DNA from: Ascidiella aspersa
Taxonomy: Eukaryota
Direction: 5' to 3'
NCBI GenBank assembly: GCA_963924565.1
Contig: OZ004612.1
Location: 10,354,001 to 10,418,000, forward strand
DNA: 64,000 nt
In this document: positions 3,301-47,600 of the stretch, piece after piece
Numbering within the stretch: position 1 is the stretch's first letter
Layout of the letters: every line of letters starts with the position of its first letter
Program-made: the position numbers and the translations under genes
Notes under the pieces: model-generated
Databases searched by the model: none
Seen by the model: the letters and a program-made list of their open reading frames with translations, nothing else
Told to the model about the DNA's origin: nothing

Positions 3301-6300
3301 TCGACGTTTGGCTTGAACACAATCTTGTTGCGATAGGTCACTGTGTCGTTCACCACCTGGGTAGAAGCAAATGTGTGGCGTTTGGTTTTATGTGCAGATC
3401 GAGCAAGGCTAAAATGTAGCCTGTGGTTGGTTTGAAACTCACCACCTCGGACATCTCAGGACCATCGTTTTACCGACTAAGCTAAACGCAGGCTCATTTG
3501 AAGCTTGTTAACAAACGAGGTATTGTCCCGATATGGCCGAGGTTGTGTTCGAAACTCATTGTGAGTTTGAAAGTCCTGGTGAATTATTCTGACAAACGAT
3601 TTACGGCATACTTACGATATAAACCAGTGCTGTACGGAAAGGCTGTTAACGAAATCAGTTGGCCTAATTAGGATTGCAGTGCGACCAAGGTACGGCTAAA
3701 AATCGAAACTCACAGTGAGTTTAGGGGCAACTGATTTCTGTAAACCTTTTGGTTTATAATTAACTGATTTCTGTAAAAGTCTTCTGGTATATATTTATGA
3801 GTATGTCGTAATCGTTCGTCAGTTCTACTGCACCACAAGAAGATAACAGTATTTACCCATGCGTATACCATGGCCCTGTTGCTAATTTCATGCCCTTTTT
3901 CGATGATATTTTGCTGTGATGTGACAATTGCTAAAAGTACATACTATTTTTGTCTATTACTTACCCAAAGTGCCATAATTTAGCAAGCTGACAAAATCCA
4001 AGAAAAAAAATTGCACAGCAAGCGTGTCAAATCTAAGCATAACAGTTCCCTATACAAAACACATTACACTCTATTCGCCCTAAAAACATACGAATATTCT
4101 CCAAAATCCAACTAAGTTTTTTTTGTTGTTTTTTACTAAATAAAAGAAAGTAAAGAAAGTAAAGTAAAATATGTGGTGAATGTGTAGTGGCGTATTATCC
4201 CATTGGCCAAACTGGAGGCCGGAAATGTCTGATAGGTCAGTAATTGTTCAGACTCAGTCCTCAGGACAACCGGTCTCCCATAAGGAGACGGTGTCGCCAC
4301 TTGGAGGTAGGGCCAGAGTTATAACTGCGCATCAGAAGGTCAACATTTTTACCTTTTTGTTTATAGCGCAAGTGTTAAAAGCAGTGTAAATAGTAATAAG
4401 TTTAGTGTTTTACTGTCCCAAAGAACCCGGTGTTACCCAGAAAACAAAAACGGCTGGATACTACCCTTAACTCCTTAAGGGATCCGGTTAAAGACCCCCT
4501 TCAGATTAGTAAAAACCAACTAAGTTCTTGATGACGTCACCGACCTTCGATGACGTATTGCACGCGTTCAGCGCCGTCACGAAGATAACGTGCGTGTCGT
4601 TAAAGCTGGGCGTGCAGGCCGGGTCCGACCCGATCGTCATGCGTTGCTCGATGGCGCGTGACGTCATGCCCGGCTCGCGGGGAATCACCGCGGTCAGGCG
4701 GTGTCGGTCGCACGTGACCCGTGAGCAGCTTTGGAGCTCGCAAGCGCGCTGTTCCTGTTCCTCCTGGGTATTGTTCACACACCTTCGGCTGCATCTGAGC
4801 GGGACATCGGTTTAACTCAGTGCTTCCCAACCAGTTGGAAGCTATTTCAGGTGAGCCGTTAAGCATTTCTAAATATTACAGTTTTCTACTAGATCGGGAA
4901 ATTATTGCATTATCATTGGATGTGTTTTGTTGCATTAATTATTATTTAAGTACATAGGTCAGTATAGTAAAGATACAAGTTTTGTGTAACAGTTAACCTC
5001 ATTTAGGCAAGATATGCCCTTATATATATATAACATACATTATAGTGCGGTGGGACCAATGGGTGAGATGTGTGGTGCTTCAAAAGGGCGTTTAAAACTG
5101 GTTATCGGAAGCTTTGTGCATTTATGATACAACTGTGCTCAACTTTAAAATAATGAAGATATTTAGAACTTCGATATTCCATTTACCATAGGCGAACAAC
5201 GACCTAAAACATTGCAACATACATTGAAATTAGGTGAAAAAATGTGGGTCATTCCGATTTGTGCTGTGGTTCACAGAAGTGTTTAACTTGAAACTTGTAC
5301 CATACCATAACATTAGCAGCAGCAAACGACCTGGTCAGTTTAACAACGTATGGAACATCCTTTCCTTATTTTCCTCTTTCCATAGGTGTAAAACGGTACA
5401 AATATGATAATACTTCTGCAGAAATACTAACTTGAACTTACACATACAAACATTTTACAAAATACTAAACAGTAACCTTGTAAATACCGACATTGCCACT
5501 ATGTTGGCCAAATATAAAACCAATTGTGCACAGCGTTTCGGCACTTTTAGTCCGTCGGCCGGTTAGCTCAGTTGGTTAGAGCGTCGTGCTAATAACGCGA
5601 ATGTCGCGGGTTCGATCCCCGTACTGGCCACACTGCCTTGATAGCTCAGTCGGGAGAGCGTTAGACTGAAGATCTAAAGGTCCCTGGTTCAATCCCGGGT
5701 CGAGGCAAAATTTTGACACATTACTAAAAATAAGCCTAAATTTGCTAAAAATTCATTGCGTTCAGTTATTTACAAGAAATATTTGGTATGTGTTCGTCTT
5801 ACAAAATAAGACTTGTTGGTTTTCATTTGGAAAGCAGCAAAACAGCAAAATAACACCAAAAATAAAAAAATAACACTTAAGATGCAGAATAACGTACCAC
5901 GCTTAATTGTGATATTATAATTAACACATTAAAGCAATAATAAATGAAAACAAAAAACAACGGCGAAAACCAAACATTAATTTGTGTAGCCTATATAGGC
6001 ACCACATTGGAAGGGTAGTATAAGCTCAGGGAGATGTTTATGCAGCCTAAAATGCAGCCTATCTACTGAAATCCGAAAGCTACACTGATAGGGCGTTTGA
6101 AGACTTTTTTAGATGGACGCATTTCACGAAGACTTTTCACGAGGGTGGGAACCTTAAACTTTGCAATCTGGCCTGAATCTTCACGTTGCTGAGATTTAAA
6201 TCGCAGTATACTTTAATAAACGACCAACAGAGTATAAGTGCTTCCCGCATTTAAAAACAATATAGGTTGCCCTTGCATAATTATAGTATTTTAAGTGTGT

Positions 6301-9300
6301 ACAAACAGCATGCAGCAAACACAGGCATACCCAAGTGCGTTTTTGTACAGCTTGCACCTGTCCGGGTCTTTGGTAAACGACATATCGCACATGCGTTTTC
6401 GGGACTGCTGACCACCGCCGCACGTGGCGCTACAGCGCGACCATGCCCCCCATGTAGACCACACCTCCATGCATGACGTTTCGTCATCCTGTGACGCACA
6501 ATAAAGAAAGGGTTTAGTAGGGGACAGGGCGGACCCTCAGGATTTTGTTTGTCAGGGACATGACACATTTCCAGCTATGACGTAACACTTTTACGTTATA
6601 ACGTGACGTCATATTAAGATAAATCTTAAAAAACCTGTGCAAACACGTGCGCTATATTTGGTTTAAATTGACAAAACGTATTTAAAGGATACATGATATG
6701 ACGCATTTGACAAAAAATTATATTTATGAAAAAAGCTTTTTTTCAGTCTATAAGTTCGCATTGCACAACGTGCCATAGTTAGCAGGGAATCTTTAAAGTA
6801 AATAGATAGGTCCTAAACGGACAAAAAAACACTGAAAACGAAAAAAATGATTTTTAATAAAACAAAATATAGTTTTTAGGAGACATGGCCTGAAAAGCGC
6901 GTAGGCCTAGGCGTCGAAAAAAGCGCACTTATGAATATAGTTGAGGACACTCCAGCAAACAATCAATAATATCATGGATGACCCTCTTAGGTTACTTTCT
7001 ATTTTTACTCATTTTTCGATTGACTTTTTATGATACATGACAAAACTAAATTTTTAGCTAAATAAGGCGTCCGGTAGGTCTTTTTTCCGAACTTCGATTT
7101 TTGGACAATACCGAAAAGCAAAATTAAGCCTATATTCGGCTAAGTTAAACAGCAACAGCAATCTACCACGCTATTGCTGCGAAATGCAGGCACCACTTAA
7201 CATCATAGCAAAAAAATACTTAATAAAGCTGCCTCAATCAACAAACATTTTTGGTTACTTAACTATCTTTTCCAAACCGGCTAGTCTTATATGAGCGACA
7301 ATATTACCAGTAACGCAGAACCAAAATTCTTTGTCCGAGGTCACTTAGCACAGTGTTTCTTAAACTGGTAAATTCTTTTTTGCAATGGTAAACCACTTGA
7401 GATAGGTGAATAGTTTATTTTGTGTATTGATATTTGTACCTATTTATATATTTGCTCAAGTCTGACAAACATCATTTTTGCTGACTATGCCAAAATGGAT
7501 TCTACTATGCCAAATGGATTCCAACAACCGGGCTAACCCCACTGGGGTCTTGCAACTACTGGTGCTTATGAAACCTAGTAGGCTACATGTGTTGTAGCCT
7601 ATAGTTATTAAGGTCGTGTATGTAATAATAACGTTTTATGGTAGGGATGAACAAAACTGAAAAAAGAACCCCTGACTTAGCATACAAAAATACACTGTAT
7701 TAATTGATTCGAAAGTGTTGTACTTACCCCCAGTTTACAGTCGAACCGTCGGTCGCAAAGCCATCCATTGCTGATGCACTGCAGCCGCGGCAAAACCACG
7801 CTGGTCGTAGTATTTCCGCGGTCACAGCCGTAGAAATCCTTCGGGCATGTCACTGAAAGAGTTTAATCAAAGTGTGACAACTGACAACTTACGTTTAAAT
7901 GTTAAGACGGACCTTGCCGTAGAAGGCTGCCTGGATAAGGTATAAGAAAACTAATAGGGACTTTATTCGGAATTTAAATTCATTCTTCATACAATGCTTA
8001 AAATTTACCCCATAGCATTCAAACTAGATCGCACACTACACAGAATTGATAAGAATATAATAAATACAGCATTATGTTAAAAACATTTCGGGTTAAGTGC
8101 TAATGTTTTGTATTGCAAAACTGTAGTTACTAGTGTTGAACTTTTTAAGTCGTAGTTGTAAATCAGAGGGATTCAGTTTTAAAACACTGCTTCGGCAAAA
8201 CAACAACCCTTTACAAAACTATTTCCACGTCTGGCAAATGATTCATTGCTATCGATTGCTACCAGACTGGCAGCGAAAGAAACTAGACAACTTTTCGACG
8301 GTTTACGCCCGTCGGCCGGTTAGCTCAGTTGGTTAGAGCGTCGTGCTAATAACGCGAATGTCGCGGGTTCGATCCCCGTACTGGCCACACTGCCTTGATA
8401 GCTCAGTCGGGAGAGCGTTAGACTGAAGATCTAAAGGTCCCTGGTTCAATCCCGGGTCGAGGCACATTTTTGTGAAAAACACAAACTGTTAAAATGTAAA
8501 AAAAACACGCTTTTAAATGATTTTTTGGCTTCTTCTGGCTTAGTAAGGTGACCATTTTTTATTGTCGCAAAAACTTTTTGTAATTTTGGAAAAGAGAGTG
8601 TTTGTATTCCAAATAGGCACTAAGGCACATCCGCAAGCATTTTAGGATTAAATACGCATTATCCATGACAAATGAATAGTTTTGAGACATTTACATATCG
8701 TTTGTCGTTTGCTAAGGGCGATTAAATTACTCTATCGTGTTTCTGTTAAAAGTGTGCCGCGAAATAGTTGAGATTTTTTTAGTGTGCCGCGAGCCAAAAA
8801 GTTTGGGAACCACCGGTTTAGGGCATCCACGAAAAGGGGGCACCAAAAATATTTATTGTCGGATTAACATTGTAGTTGTTCTATACCCTAATCATTTTTA
8901 AGATATCGTATTTAGGAAAAATAAGCGCAAATTCCTAATATAAATACATATTTTTGGAATATAATATTTAGGCTATAGTTGTTGTATTTTAGTTTAATTT
9001 TTTTTTGCCTTTACTTATTTGTTATTTTAAAATTACAGATATATTAAGTGTACCGCAATCTTGTAACATGCCTATTAGTACGAGTACTTCCAACGTCCAA
9101 CATTTTGTTGCCATGAAACAAATCGGATGTCGATTTCTCAACAAGTGCTCAAAAGCACGATTAAGATAACTTAAAAAAACACTTACGCTTGCAATCGCCC
9201 TTGTCCGCGCATATGCAGAACAAGCCGTCCACCTTCCCCTGTTCCAGGCACAAATCCGCATAAGGGCAGTCTCGCCGCTTGCAGTTGAGGGAATTCCCGG

Positions 9301-41600: not shown

Positions 41601-44600
41601 TAACAGCTTACATTGGCCTTACAAAGCCGAATCATCTTTTAATGTTATAGAAATGTAATGGTATAATAATAAAACTTAAGTTTCTGAATTAGAGGGTTTT
41701 CATTTTCGGCAAATTTTTAATTTGTACTGTTGTCTTCTGTACTTCCATTATGAATTTTGTTATTTATAAGTGTGGGCAATAATGTTAATATTTTTGTATG
41801 TGAGGAATGAAATCAGGTTTGACTGTAAAAAAATTATGGTTGCCTAAAACAAGTACACCGAAAACCATTGCAGACTTAACGAATCTGTCGAACAATGATG
41901 CAAACGGGGCAGCCTAGAAAAAGAGCTAGCCTGCAGTGAGGTTCGAACTCACGACCTGCGGTCATACCGGAACCGTCGCTCTACCAACTGAGCTATACAC
42001 AGACTCAGAGGGTAGCGAATCGGGAAACAATCATGACACCAATGCCTGCTACATTCTGTTAGTACAAGCAACTTTACATTGAAGGGGATCTACAGTACCA
42101 TATCATTGTTCAAAGAAACATGCCACACATACGCGTTGAACAACTGTGATCTTGCCCTACTGAAGCTGCTTTTTGACTAACGATTACGGCTTACGTATCA
42201 TTATTTTTTTAAGGCCTGCCCTGTTTGCATCATTGACCGACAGAATCGGTGAGTCTGCAATGGCTTTCGGTATACTAATAAGACTAAAGCCGAAATCGTT
42301 AGTCAAAAAGCAGCTTCAGAAGGGCTAGATCACAGTTGTTAACACACACGTGTGGTATGTTTCACTGCCTAAAACAATATGTACCGGTAAGTAAAAAGCA
42401 CATTAAATGGTATAAACTTTCAAAAATCGGATACCTGCTGCGAACACTTCCTCCTCCTGCTGCCGCTCCAGGATCTGTTTGCGCTTCTGCTCCTTCCAGT
42501 TTGGATCGAGGAGTCCGATCCTCATGTGCTCCTGCATCTTGCTCGAGTGAATCTTCTCACCCGTGATCGGAGACACCATGTAGCTGTCAGGAACAGGCTG
42601 AAAGCGGGGAGAACAGCATTTTAGTGCTTAACTCCGTGGTTCTTAAGCTGTTTGCCTTGAGAGATTGTCACGTGTGCCGCAAAACTTTTGCAATTTCGGA
42701 AAATACGTTATTTGTATTACCAATGGGTACACAGACTATACACGCAAGTATTTTAGACTCAAATACGCACTATCTATTACAAAGTATTAATATTGAGACA
42801 TTTACATATAGTTTGTTGTGTGTTAAGGGAGATTGTAAAATTAGTCTATTGTTGTTTGGTTAAAAGCGTGCCGCGAAATATTTCAGATATTTTAGGTGTG
42901 CAGGGAGCCAAAAAAGTTTGAGAACCACTGGTTTCACTTAAAATTTCGTTTTGGTGAGCTCAAATCACAGCAGTTTTAAAAGACTTGCAGCAGAGTATTA
43001 AGGATACTTTACGTCGCCAGTCAAAAATTCAGCCTTACAAAACTCTATAAATCAAATTAAACCAACAACAATTTGCAGAAACTGTACAAACTGTTATTAC
43101 CTTTAAACAAAAACATTTTTCCACAAAAACTTAACATTTTAATCACATAAAAGTACATCGTGTCACATTTCCATAGCTGAGTTCTATAATTCATACTTTG
43201 TTATCTAGCAGTGGACTGTAGTTAATAAAAGCGGTGATATACCTGTTTAACTTTTTCTTTCTTTTTCTCCTGTCTTGTCTTGGGGTCATAATTTTTCCGG
43301 ATGATGACCTCATGGGAGGGTGGTTTGATGGGAGGCGCAGGTTGGATGCGGGGAGTACGGCTGGGAGCAACCTCCTCTTCTTCTTCATCAGAACTCTATA
43401 AATGCATGAAAAAGTTAAATTGACAAACCCAGGTAGGTGGAGTTAGGCAGATGTAGGACCCAAATATAAACTTGTTGTTGCAAGGATTTAGTGGATAACG
43501 TTGTTTGTAGCCCGCTCCCCTTTAAAGTTATTTAGGAATACAAAAAAGTTTTTAACCACATCCTTAATCTTTTTTAGCGTTGCTTGATAATAAATTGCGA
43601 AGCCAAAAAGGCCGAGTAGATCGACAGCATCTTGATTGAGACGTTTCGAAACAAGCTTGTATCATCTTCAGTTAATGTGACTGAGAAGTTTTTTAAAGTT
43701 AATAGCAACTAATAATGACAAAGCAGCTTAAAATCACCTCTTCCATATCCATGTCAACGAGCTGTGGATGCTCATCTCTCTCTTCTTCCTCTTCTTTCTC
43801 CTTGTTTTCCTCTTCGTGCTGCTTCATTGCATCCTCACCAAACTTGTCTATCCTCTCCTGCTGCAAGAGTCGAGTCCCCAGCTCGTCGATGGTGACCGGC
43901 CGCGGAAAGTTTCCTGGGAATTTTAGAGTATAGTACTATCTAATTTTGAAATATTTGGGCCAAGCTTTCGATGTGTTTGGTATTAAAATTACAAACAGAC
44001 ATTTGCACTTGATGAGAAAAGAGTATTACCATAGCGGTAACATAACTAGGGATTGTGCAAAAATATGGTTTATAGATTAATGGAAATGTTTGTCGTAATG
44101 CGAATATAATTTAAATTTTATATTTTAAACTCTATCCCATTTTTAGATGCTCACTTTTTTATGATATTTTTTAAGACACCTTTATTTATAATAATCTAGT
44201 TCAGTGGTTCTAAATCTTTTGAGCTTTGTGCCCCCCTTTGATAAACTCTCGACCCTCGTGGCCAATACCAAGCATTGGGTTTCATGCCTTATTGTACAAA
44301 TAAGTCATTTTAAATTTAAATTAACGTAGTATTTTTTATATGTATTATTATCGGCCCTGTTTTGTACTGTGCCAAGAGATGTCACCACATTCGTCGAGAT
44401 TATTTCTCTATTTTCGTTTTATTATTGCGTTACTATTAGCCTACTTGACAAATAAGCTGTGCATGAAAGACTGAATGTTGGCCTAAAAATGACCTTGAAT
44501 ATTTGAATAACCCTTTATGCGTTTTACGATGAAATGTTTATTTTGCACCTGAACTATCTTACATAAAATTGCGAAACCGTTGCACCTGGCATTGCACCCT

Positions 44601-47600
44601 ATTTGCTTGCCTAACAGCATTTGTTGTACACTCAATGATTAGGTAAGGGTGTCCGCAAGTAATAATTGGCCGCCCGGAAAAACGCTGACGCCGCACTGCA
44701 TGCAACGTATGCAGCAGAACAGTATTGTTTAGCCACAGCGACAGGCCTTTAAACAAACTTTTCACTCGCGAATGACTAATAAGGCGTAACTTTCCGCGAT
44801 AAAACAAATAAAAATAATCCAATATTCTACTTTAAACATCCCTACTGACGAGTCAAAGCAAGTGTCAGAAAAATAGGTAAAAAACACAAAATTAAGTTAA
44901 CTGGTAAATTTTAAATCTAGTGACACTTTGGTTTTCGCAATATCTAGCTAAAGAGTAATGCCCGTGTCCCCCCAGGGAGCACAGTTGAGAAACCCTGCTA
45001 TAGTTAATAAAGTTAAATAAAAAATGTTATATCTGGCCTGTGTTTTGCGAGTTTTGAAGTTTCCTATAACTTGGCGACCCCTTAGAAATTGGCAGTTTGC
45101 AATTTTTACACTCATCTTAAAAAAATAAAGGATATTTAATGCTGATATATGCAAATACCTTTGCAAGTTCTTATATAAACAAGCAAGAAGGATTTAAAAA
45201 CATAACATCACATTTATATTCCCAATACACAAATTTTATATTAATTAAAACATAATCTAATTTAAAAAGGAACATAGATCAGGATTACACTTTACAGTTA
45301 GGTAATGCATACCACGCTCATCCATTTGGAAGTCCACAGTTTCAACAACAACGAAGTCATGCCAATCGATCTGCGCATACATCAGGCGTTCTTTCTCGAT
45401 GGCCGCTTGTTGGCGCTGACGAATACGCTCCTCGTGTTTTGTCCATGCAACTCTGTATTTTACCTGAAGAAAATCAAAGTTGAACAGGAATGTAAAACAA
45501 ATGTTAGTTAATATGAAGGACGTTTCTAACATACTTTTACAAGTTGTAGTTTTACTGGTCATGGGCATATAAAAATATCTCTCTCTTTTAAAATGTTTTT
45601 AATTTTAAATTATTATTTTCACACTTAAAGTGTCAAAACAAGTCACCTAACAAATTATCACTTTAACTCTAAACGTCACATCACTAGTATACTGGGTCAA
45701 AACTATTTGAATTAACTATAACTGTTTTGACATGGAGCATAATGGTTGGAGGTTGGAGTAAGACGTAATAAGAATATCAAAGCCCATACAGAAGTAGGTA
45801 TCATTTTGAACGTTTCGAATAACTCTTTATTCGTTTTCAACATCAATGGGCTTTGATATTCTTATTATGTTTTAACATGCCTATTATAAAGTTTAACTGC
45901 AAATAATTAAGCGTGTATTTATTTCTTCTAAATAAAATATATTATAAAGTTATATTTATGAGACTTGCTAAGAGCTTTGGAGAGTGACTTACCTCATCCA
46001 ATACAATTTTAGGATTATCACCTTCTTTTTTGAGTTTCTCCAATGTAGTCTTCGGAGGTATCAAAATCTGAAAGCAAAATTATATATCTTTTGTATAATT
46101 AACTAAAATTTCCATTTAAAAATCCAAAAACCTTACACTCAATAGGTGTGGGTTCACACAACTAGACTACTATATTTTCAGGTATGTCTAATAGACAATA
46201 TAACAACACAAAAATCCAAAAATATATCAAATAATGTTTGATGAAACATATACACTGTAAGCAACTTGTACATACCTTGCTGTATTGTTCACACAGTTTG
46301 GTGAAATACTGGAAGAGTGAGTGCTGTGGGCGCAGAAAATCAAACTGAAAGTTCTTTGCCTCTCTTTGCATAAGCTGGGTGAGAAAGGTTCGACCATTGC
46401 GAGCAACAAACTGAGCAGTGAGGCGGACCTAATAGAATAATTTTTTTTAAACAGTGTAAATCAACTGTGGATCAAGTTAAGAAATTGTATTTTCTATAAG
46501 CTAAGAACATTTTACCACAATTCACTTGACCTTCAAAAACTAAATAGCGCAAAGCTAAAACAATTAATATTATTACGTCAAAGGAGGATTTCTTTGACTT
46601 GCAATATATTTATATAATTAAAAAAAAGTGCAAGAGGTGTAGTAAAATTTCCAACAAGAAACTGAAAGAGTTGTTTTGTTTGGCAACAAAGTGTAAACTA
46701 AGTAATTTACCAGTTCTAACCAATAATAAATAAATTAAATTCTTTAGTTGTTTACCACATCAAGATCATAAGCTGCAATGGAAGGTGGATCAGCAATAAA
46801 CTCATAATTTGCTGGTGGGTCTTTGGGAACAAACTGTTCCTGAACTACAGCAACAGAGGGCTAAAAATGAACAAAATACACGTTATATTAAACAAATAAC
46901 TAACAGTTGATATTTTTAAGGTACCTTAACTGTGGAAGGAACACTCTTCGGAACACTTGGTTCTTTTCCTTTTCCCTCAATAAACTCTTTCACCTTATGA
47001 CGGTAGTAGGCATGGTATGGGTCATCTGGAATTATACATTATTGGGTTTACAAACATAAATAAAACTTTGGTTATTTAAATACTTCTAATTGTTGACTGA
47101 CTATATACATTATAAAAGAATAACAAAAAAACAATTATTTATATAACTTTCACAATAATATAAATCATTTTACATTGCAAAATTACTATTCCAGTGGTTT
47201 AATGTTACTTGGTTTTAAAATATTTGCCAGTTTTTCTTGTATTTTTATGGCCCAAATGAAAAAAGGGAATCAAATAAAATGACAATTTGATTTATTTTGG
47301 CAAATTCTAATCTAGTCACTTAAGGTAAAAAAAATTTTTGCTAAAGTTGGGGTAAAAGAAACAATGCCATCACACCTAAAGTATATATAATTTTTTTTTA
47401 ATTTCTTTTTCAGGTAAAAAATACATTCTTGGACTAACCAATAAGCCCTCAGCCATTTTAATTTTTTTTTCTCTGAGTAAAGTTATGCTGGTTTAAACAA
47501 CAGTTGTAAAATTCGTATCTTAAAAAGGTTTGTAAGACCATTAGAAACGCGTGTAATTCCTATACAACTAACTTTGTGGCAATGTCCTTTATTCTGTGTT

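Follow-up and report, generated by a model that had tools for sequence, protein, structure and literature searches.

The stretch analysed here (the window) comprises 64,000 nucleotides of the Ascidiella aspersa genome (NCBI GenBank assembly GCA_963924565.1, contig OZ004612.1, positions 10,354,001 to 10,418,000 of the forward strand), and contains a 513-bp insert that is likely to be an old, decayed copy of a non-autonomous repeat family propagating in the manner of Penelope-like elements (PLEs). Enclosing it exactly are two perfect copies of the 12-nt sequence TGCCTAAAACAA, at 41841-41852 and 42366-42377, the sole direct repeat of 12 nt or more within 1.2 kb. Minus-strand open reading frame (ORF) fragments at 42403-42579 and 45257-45568 both match Pfam PRP21_like_P, which places the insert within an SF3A1-like gene, in an intron and ~60 nt past an exon. 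Its parts are listed below; unit positions refer to the 353-bp repeat unit of the family, the boundary between position 353 of one unit and position 1 of the next is written 353/1, and S and L denote the two sites at which insertions of the family have their 3′ ends.

41841-41852, no strand: left target-site duplication, TGCCTAAAACAA, a perfect 12-nt repeat of 42366-42377 that abuts the end of the family homology.
42366-42377, no strand: right target-site duplication, TGCCTAAAACAA, a 12-nt direct repeat.
41853-42201, minus strand: arm S, one full unit (positions 1-352), 84% identical over 357 columns to the array unit L031:1042-1394.
42202-42205, no strand: inner junction of the arms, where 0-4 nt of uncertain origin separate 42201, the final base that aligns to unit position 1, from the inverted-repeat arm starting at 42206.
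42206-42365, plus strand: arm L, inverted and 5′-truncated, unit ~281-353 followed by 1-~95, identified by inverted repeats and BLAST to the unit.
41928-42004, minus strand: decayed tRNA-like cloverleaf with A and B boxes, called by ARAGORN and by Rfam tRNA at 37.1 bits (gathering score 29).
41918-41922, minus strand: T5 run (AAAAA on the plus strand) resembling an RNA polymerase III (Pol III) terminator, a few bases 3′ of the tRNA-like unit, read from the sequence.
42251-42304, plus strand: junction hairpin, earlier taken for a hammerhead, with CTGCAAT at 42255-42261, a GGCTT/AAGCC stem and GAAA at 42292-42295, from the sequence and comparison of copies.
42343-42354, plus strand: remnant of an AC/GT-rich stem-loop just upstream of site L, read from the sequence and predicted as a stem-loop in the young unit.
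42437-42579, minus strand: upstream SF3A1/PRP21-like host exon (Pfam PRP21_like_P, E = 5e-14), its end and the GT read from the sequence.

The minus strand of the window from 42201 to 41852 aligns end to end with positions 1-352 of the 353-bp array unit, and the 3′ end of this arm, adjoining the left duplication, lies at site S and reads CGGTGTAC(T), like 19 other S-type ends. Arm L is matched by two BLAST blocks, 42216-42277 (unit 291-353) and 42278-42348 (unit 1-71), which follow one another without a break and show that this arm was read through a unit-to-unit junction; similarity extends from about 42206 to 42365 (unit ~281 to ~95), and the 3′ end, adjoining the right duplication, lies at site L and reads ATGTTTCA(C), like other L-type ends. 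Two inverted-repeat pairs, 41852-41922 with 42206-42276 and 42139-42203 with 42276-42340, show both ends of the minus-strand segment to be joined, as their reverse complement, in plus-strand 42206-42340, with the 353/1 boundary at 42277/42278 inside the loop of the junction hairpin. The window copy is approximately 84% identical to young family copies and is therefore old. A previous inspection of the letters alone (the sequence-only reading) had described a 513-bp insert between perfect 12-bp repeats in an SF3A1 intron, one permuted monomer on the minus strand, a partial monomer spanning the junction on the plus strand, and a tRNA-like unit with A and B boxes; the repeat search, the Pfam matches in the flanking ORF fragments, the alignments to unit 1-352 of 353 bp and to unit ~281-353 joined to 1-~95, and the ARAGORN and Rfam tRNA calls (37 bits) agree with it on each of these.

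When the window's own genome (308.6 Mb in 75 contigs) was searched with the 513-bp insert, there were 3,685 candidates and, among them, 208 scored matches. Most of the matches span exactly query 163-513, corresponding to one unit, with many arranged head to tail at a spacing of 353-354 bp, in arrays of up to 7.3 units at 99-100% identity (locus L031, on G000:C9). A 21-nt family motif matches the genome 2,545 times compared to zero for the reversed control, so that the family has at least about 2,500 units and accounts for roughly 0.3% of the genome; the earlier proposal that the insert is a copy of a non-autonomous retroelement, here of a non-coding family, is supported. At ten loci the identity to the array unit is 99-100%, showing that the family was recently active, and the dispersed copies are 5′-truncated and have target-site duplications of 10-14 bp. 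Contigs from sequencing runs labelled as several organisms contain the family, with 1,225 contigs at ≥99% in one run (X2), and matches at 90-95% only in another (X1), which suggests from the sequences that it is also present in relatives. Copies alternate between CG and TG or CA at fixed sites (ACGT/ATGT and CGAT/CAAT, for example at unit 6-8 and ~331-334), a pattern of CpG decay that may reflect germ-line methylation of the repeats.

To describe how copies begin and end, we mapped approximately 30 independent insertions onto the unit. Clear duplications at 13 independent insertions are 10-14 bp long (median 13) and on average ~71% A+T, compared with 62% for the window overall. The 5′ ends are truncated at many positions, whereas the 3′ ends fall in two tight classes, and none has an A-rich tail. 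Site S, at unit ~347-353, accounts for 20 ends reading TTCGGTGTAC(TA), and site L, at unit ~94-103, for about 15 ends reading ATGTTTCA(TTG). Many insertions are head-to-head composites within a single duplication such that both outward ends are 3′ ends, and in eight of nine clean composites (the window, L002, L004, L009, L015, L024, L025 and L028) an S end is paired with an L end; each of these eight has an inverted, 5′-truncated arm inside the same duplication. The 5′ ends also pile up at two places, at unit positions -5 to +7 (8 of ~35 arms, where about one is expected) and at unit 253-306, just 3′ of the cloverleaf, so that both 3′ and 5′ ends accumulate at 353/1. Loci L005 (G000:C8:1.52 Mb) and L006 (G000:C8:22.2 Mb) have an identical inner inverted junction (unit 288 to ~335) and unrelated flanks, and it appears from these sequences that a head-to-head composite was itself transcribed through and copied again, in which case their odd outer ends are 5′ truncations. 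A match of 62 bits to the plant microRNA family MIR847 at L015:2411-2577 is a false positive arising from the long perfect palindrome where the two arms of a young composite meet.

Each unit carries at positions 202-276 a complete cloverleaf with a 7-bp acceptor stem, 4-bp D stem, 5-bp anticodon stem and 5-bp T stem; in young copies it scores 55 bits with Rfam tRNA, is called 'Ala-GGC' by ARAGORN, and has intact A and B boxes. Five to eight bases past the cloverleaf is a T4 run in young copies, or T5 in older subfamilies, which is conserved in an alignment of 20 copies. A hairpin with GGCTT/AAGCC stems crosses the unit junction with the 353/1 boundary in its loop, an AC/GT-rich palindromic stem-loop of variable length is present at unit ~66-81 in the same alignment, and the predicted fold of the whole unit is far more stable than that of shuffled sequences (z-score -5.1). 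The tRNA-like unit could plausibly serve as a Pol III cassette, to which extent the tRNA promoter of the sequence-only reading stands, although as a promoter of the whole unit it is unlikely because of the T4-5 run directly behind the cloverleaf; it probably makes a short RNA of its own or recruits TFIIIC, instead of driving transcription of the element as a whole. Being internal and self-terminated, with no clustering of insertion 5′ ends at its start, it is not the head of a classical short interspersed nuclear element (SINE), and copies that all start at the tRNA head, as an ordinary SINE would have, are not what is seen, 5′ ends being found at many positions. Termination by Pol III was considered as the source of ends S and L and rejected, since the T4-5 run after the tRNA-like unit would stop the polymerase first. 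We also rejected a reading of GGTGAGT at unit ~323 as a 5′ splice site, the motif not being conserved among subfamilies. Thousands of the family's cloverleaves will be miscalled as tRNA genes in genome annotation.

A second repeat family contains the same tRNA-like module, together with a spacer of ~30 nt, in a tandem unit of 138-139 bp (for example at G000:C4:33026786-33027493 and G000:C6:30148074-30148508). A pattern search for it gave 708 matches versus 2 for the control, and most of the matches listed lie within a few Mb of contig ends.

The same genome contains genuine Penelope-like elements. Searches for reverse transcriptase (RT) and for GIY-YIG domains were performed, the former giving 95 matches with open frames of up to 880 aa and copies 97-100% identical. 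PLE family A (loci L034-L045) has an ORF with RT and, at the C terminus, a GIY-YIG domain, copies that are 97-99% identical, and a minimal hammerhead of canonical form ~60 nt before the 3′ end. Its composites are head to head within AT-rich duplications of 11-12 bp, and in all four one end is short and the other arm 33-35 nt longer; this extension is the published PLE 'tail'. The sequence-only reading took the long duplication with an inverted arm for a Penelope-type signature, and the RT and GIY-YIG element of this genome has the same arrangement, as do the elements of published studies (PMC8557442, PMC11167929). Two further loci came to light in these searches. L082 (G000:C9:23485701-23494478) consists of a compact PLE repeated in tandem with a period of 2,671 bp, with intact RT and GIY-YIG ORFs of 813-816 aa and ~220 nt of non-coding sequence per unit. 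L033 (G000:C11:2088-5303) lies on a small contig with one ORF resembling bacterial Rho and another, of 570 aa, resembling UvrC and bearing a GIY-YIG domain at its N terminus, and this contig is probably a bacterial contaminant or symbiont in the assembly.

Insertions of PLEs are partial tandems, often with an adjoining inverted and 5′-truncated copy, and have a 30-40-bp tail at one end only (PMC8557442). In purified form, the enzyme of an anole PLE cleaves each of the two target strands and extends both, and it begins reverse transcription internally, at a pair of neighbouring sites in or near an AC-rich stem-loop that have the tail between them; hammerhead cleavage is dispensable for insertion in vitro (PMC11167929). 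The 353-bp family shows each of these published structural hallmarks, differing in the ~95-nt spacing of its start sites and in duplications that are one or two bases longer. We propose that arrays of the unit would be transcribed into RNA longer than one unit, and that a PLE reverse transcriptase and GIY-YIG endonuclease acting in trans would cut an AT-rich target on both strands, the cuts lying 10-14 bp from one another. Reverse transcription would start inside the RNA either at S (unit ~347-353), which lies in the junction-hairpin loop, or at L (unit ~94-103), just 3′ of the AC-rich stem-loop. In the window copy the S-primed strand would have given the full unit on the minus strand and the L-primed strand the 160-nt plus-strand arm across the unit junction; the two cDNAs would then meet head to head, with repair leaving the 12-bp duplication, and the tRNA-like Pol III cassette in each unit may contribute a short RNA of its own or recruit TFIIIC. 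The sequence-only reading had inferred a multimeric or circular RNA template, of which the part requiring more than one unit holds, but a circular RNA is not needed because the genome contains tandem arrays that could give multimeric transcripts. The element behaves like, and probably is, a non-autonomous rider of PLEs.

Several observations weigh against this interpretation. A comparison with six PLE families, most of those in the genome lying outside it, revealed no autonomous PLE with sequence in common with the family; in BLASTN (word size 7) against 50 loci bearing PLEs, plus four more PLE families in full length, the unit dimer matched neighbouring insertions of the 353-bp family alone, at approximately the rate expected by chance. 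The S-to-L spacing of ~95 nt exceeds the 30-40 nt of a usual PLE tail, the duplications, at 13-14 bp, are slightly longer than the 11-12 bp of PLE family A, and one composite, L003, has two L ends. Several junctions have 1-5 nt of microhomology, whereas the in vitro PLE study stressed its absence. Lastly, no RNA run is among the matches in the search of sequencing runs, the matching runs being contigs and probably DNA.

The sequence-only reading had placed a hammerhead-like motif or variant at the unit junction, and this does not survive comparison of the copies. It was correct that CTGCAAT is a family trait: across approximately 50 junctions at the family loci examined the 5′ box is CTGCAAT or CTGCGAT, the latter being its CpG form, and never CTGANGA. 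The 3′ box at the same junctions is GTAA, GTTA, GCAA or similar, and the GAAA that had been included in the motif (42292-42295) is seen in the plus arm of the window alone, the other arm reading GTAA. In unselected genome-wide samples of 100 copies, none has CUGANGA, and the 3′ box is GTAA in 82, GTTA in 12, GCAA in five and GAAA in one. CUGANGA is on neither strand of the unit or of the window copy, whereas the PLE control carries it; only CUG of the seven-base box is kept, with A6, G8 and A9 changed, as well as A13. Changes at A6, G8, A9 and A13 make a dead core in hammerhead biochemistry. The G8 and C3 hammerhead mutants of the anole PLE study support this (PMC11167929), and by its sequence the family motif is a dead core and no ribozyme of the hammerhead class. 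A hammerhead drawn on the motif would in addition cut after unit 27, ~27 nt away from the insertion ends at 353/1, which lie in the loop of its 'stem II'. A covariation analysis of the tRNA stems and of the junction and AC-rich hairpins in 20 independent copies gave no measure above shuffles, the nearly invariant GGCTT/AAGCC stem offering too little variation. Rfam scans of the unit found no ribozyme of any class and no hammerhead at E ≤ 10, but the same models miss the canonical hammerhead of PLE family A, and these negatives were therefore given no weight and replaced by the direct core counts. The junction motif is instead probably a conserved hairpin that forms part of an enzyme-binding 3′ module.

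With respect to Rfam itself, the hammerhead models of Rfam 15 miss the PLE family A hammerhead (L034, minus strand, ~1255-1285) even in a 201-nt scan at E ≤ 10, so that negative results for PLE-type hammerheads are unreliable.

Other ways of generating such insertions can be weighed against use of a PLE enzyme. Movement of a SINE by the enzyme of a long interspersed nuclear element (LINE, non-LTR), with twin priming producing the inverted arm and template jumping or unequal crossing-over the multimers, is in keeping with the long duplications, 5′ truncation and junction microhomology, all of which are also typical of LINE-type target-primed reverse transcription, and with the missing PLE partner. 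It is nonetheless unlikely, because the copies lack a tail of poly(A), microsatellite or LINE-like type, the tRNA-like unit lies inside the element with a terminator directly behind it and does not form a 5′ head, the second priming site keeps to one place instead of being scattered, with S and L paired in all but one of the nine clean composites, and a genuine PLE of the same genome has an identical pattern. A repeat arising at the DNA level, whether a duplicated satellite, a tRNA-bearing miniature long terminal repeat (LTR) element of the Helenus/TRIMp3 type or a rolling-circle DNA transposon, is hardly credible. Arrays running from unit 1 to ~94 (L031 and L013) do superficially resemble an LTR-internal-LTR arrangement, and tRNA-like sequences within LTRs are known (PMC10886601), but there is no TG start to the unit (no TG..CA termini) and no conserved primer-binding site beside unit 95, head-to-head arms lie in a single duplication, and the flanks of different loci are unrelated. 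Duplications of 10-14 bp rather than 4-5 bp, with 5′ truncation at many positions, rule out the reading as an LTR element or terminal-repeat retrotransposon in miniature.

A retrozyme, in which the unit RNA would be cut by a variant hammerhead with a CUGCAAU core, circularised, and copied from the circle, is highly improbable given the altered core, the GUAA, GUUA or GCAA found in 99 of 100 copies in place of the GAAA box, the position of the predicted cut, the absence of covariation in a nearly invariant stem, and the canonical hammerheads of genuine PLEs in the same genome, even though the tandem units are of retrozyme size, the hairpin across the unit junction is conserved, the monomer has a strong predicted structure, and both kinds of end accumulate at 353/1. 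In the sense in which retrozymes are defined, the element is not one. The pile-up at 353/1 would have a ready explanation if the multimer were cut there precisely, within the loop of the conserved junction hairpin, either by an undescribed self-cleaving or protein-assisted motif or by host tRNA-processing enzymes guided by the tRNA-like unit, yielding templates of unit length that may be circular; such a ribozyme-free counterpart of a retrozyme is decidedly unlikely. Very unlikely too is the broader version in which host enzymes or a new motif cut the multimer at 353/1 or at the tRNA-like unit (RNase P or Z) to give unit-length or spacer templates, possibly circles. The two 5′-end hot spots are as this would predict, and in the anole PLE the ends of RNA-seq reads coincide with the RT start sites (PMC11167929), but multi-unit arms contain the tRNA-like unit uncut, no insertion 3′ ends lie at the RNase P site (~unit 201), and stalling of the reverse transcriptase at a stable cloverleaf or a bound protein explains the same hot spots; the absence of an RNA run among the family matches counts here as well. 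We favor the interpretation of the family as a rider of PLE enzymes.

Of all classes of eukaryotic retrotransposons the Penelope-like elements are understood least, and retrozymes, defined by a hammerhead, are their known non-autonomous riders in animals. The 353-bp family appears to use the PLE type of integration route with no hammerhead and a tRNA-like cassette in its place, which is in agreement with the in vitro finding that insertion can proceed without the ribozyme; a PLE-type rider lacking a ribozyme and carrying a tRNA-like cassette is probably what is new here. Since the unit is short, occurs in great numbers and was active recently, its two sharp start sites and near-strict pairing of S and L make it both a natural data set and a simple RNA substrate with which to test PLE priming of both strands.

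Elsewhere in the window, at 5557-5708 and 8314-8465, are two copies of a tRNA-Ile(AAT)/tRNA-Phe(GAA) gene pair 2,757 bp apart, in which the two genes are separated by 2-3 nt; all four genes score 65-66 bits.

The closest known systems are the non-autonomous PLEs, including the animal non-LTR retrozymes (PMC7229834, bioRxiv 10.64898/2026.07.22.740005) and non-autonomous Chlamys elements such as MRC1 (PMC8557442). In common with these, the family has short non-coding units, head-to-tail multicopy insertions that form pseudo-LTRs, an inverted 5′-truncated arm, an extension at one end and duplications longer than 4 bp, and it coexists with active PLEs; it differs in that its 353-bp unit has an internal tRNA-like Pol III cassette and no hammerhead, in the ~95 nt rather than 30-40 nt between start sites, and in sharing no sequence with the six PLE families compared. 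Animal non-LTR retrozymes in particular have tandem units of 170-400 nt (353 bp here) and duplications of more than 4 bp (10-14 bp here), but each of their units has a type I hammerhead, which the family lacks. PLE family A of the same genome likewise forms head-to-head composites in one duplication with one short and one tailed end, and has young copies, but it is coding, carries a canonical minimal hammerhead and a 33-35-nt tail, and has no sequence similarity to the 353-bp unit. The SINE-like elements Sm-alpha and Sj-alpha of schistosomes (PMC2770079, citing Ferbeyre et al. 1998) are similar by description in having a highly repeated unit of ~330-350 nt that tRNA finders predict as a tRNA, both tandem and dispersed, although Sm-alpha contains an active hammerhead and the family none. 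A canonical tRNA-derived SINE differs from the family, in which the tRNA-like unit is at 202-276 and followed by T4-5, there is no A-rich tail, and 5′ ends are not at the tRNA head. Finally, the TRIMp3 elements Cassandra, Helenus and Ajax are non-autonomous LTR elements whose repeats contain a 5S- or tRNA-like cassette that is transcribed independently (PMC10886601), and they share with the family a sequence inside the repeat that resembles a small-RNA gene, complete with conserved Pol III boxes and a terminator, tandem arrays, and no obvious similarity to an autonomous partner. They use LTR and integrase chemistry, with a primer-binding site, a polypurine tract and 4-5 bp duplications, in contrast to the two-armed, apparently target-primed insertions of the family with duplications of 10-14 bp, and the family would extend the idea of a small-RNA gene within a repeat, as in Cassandra and Helenus, from LTR elements to the Penelope class.

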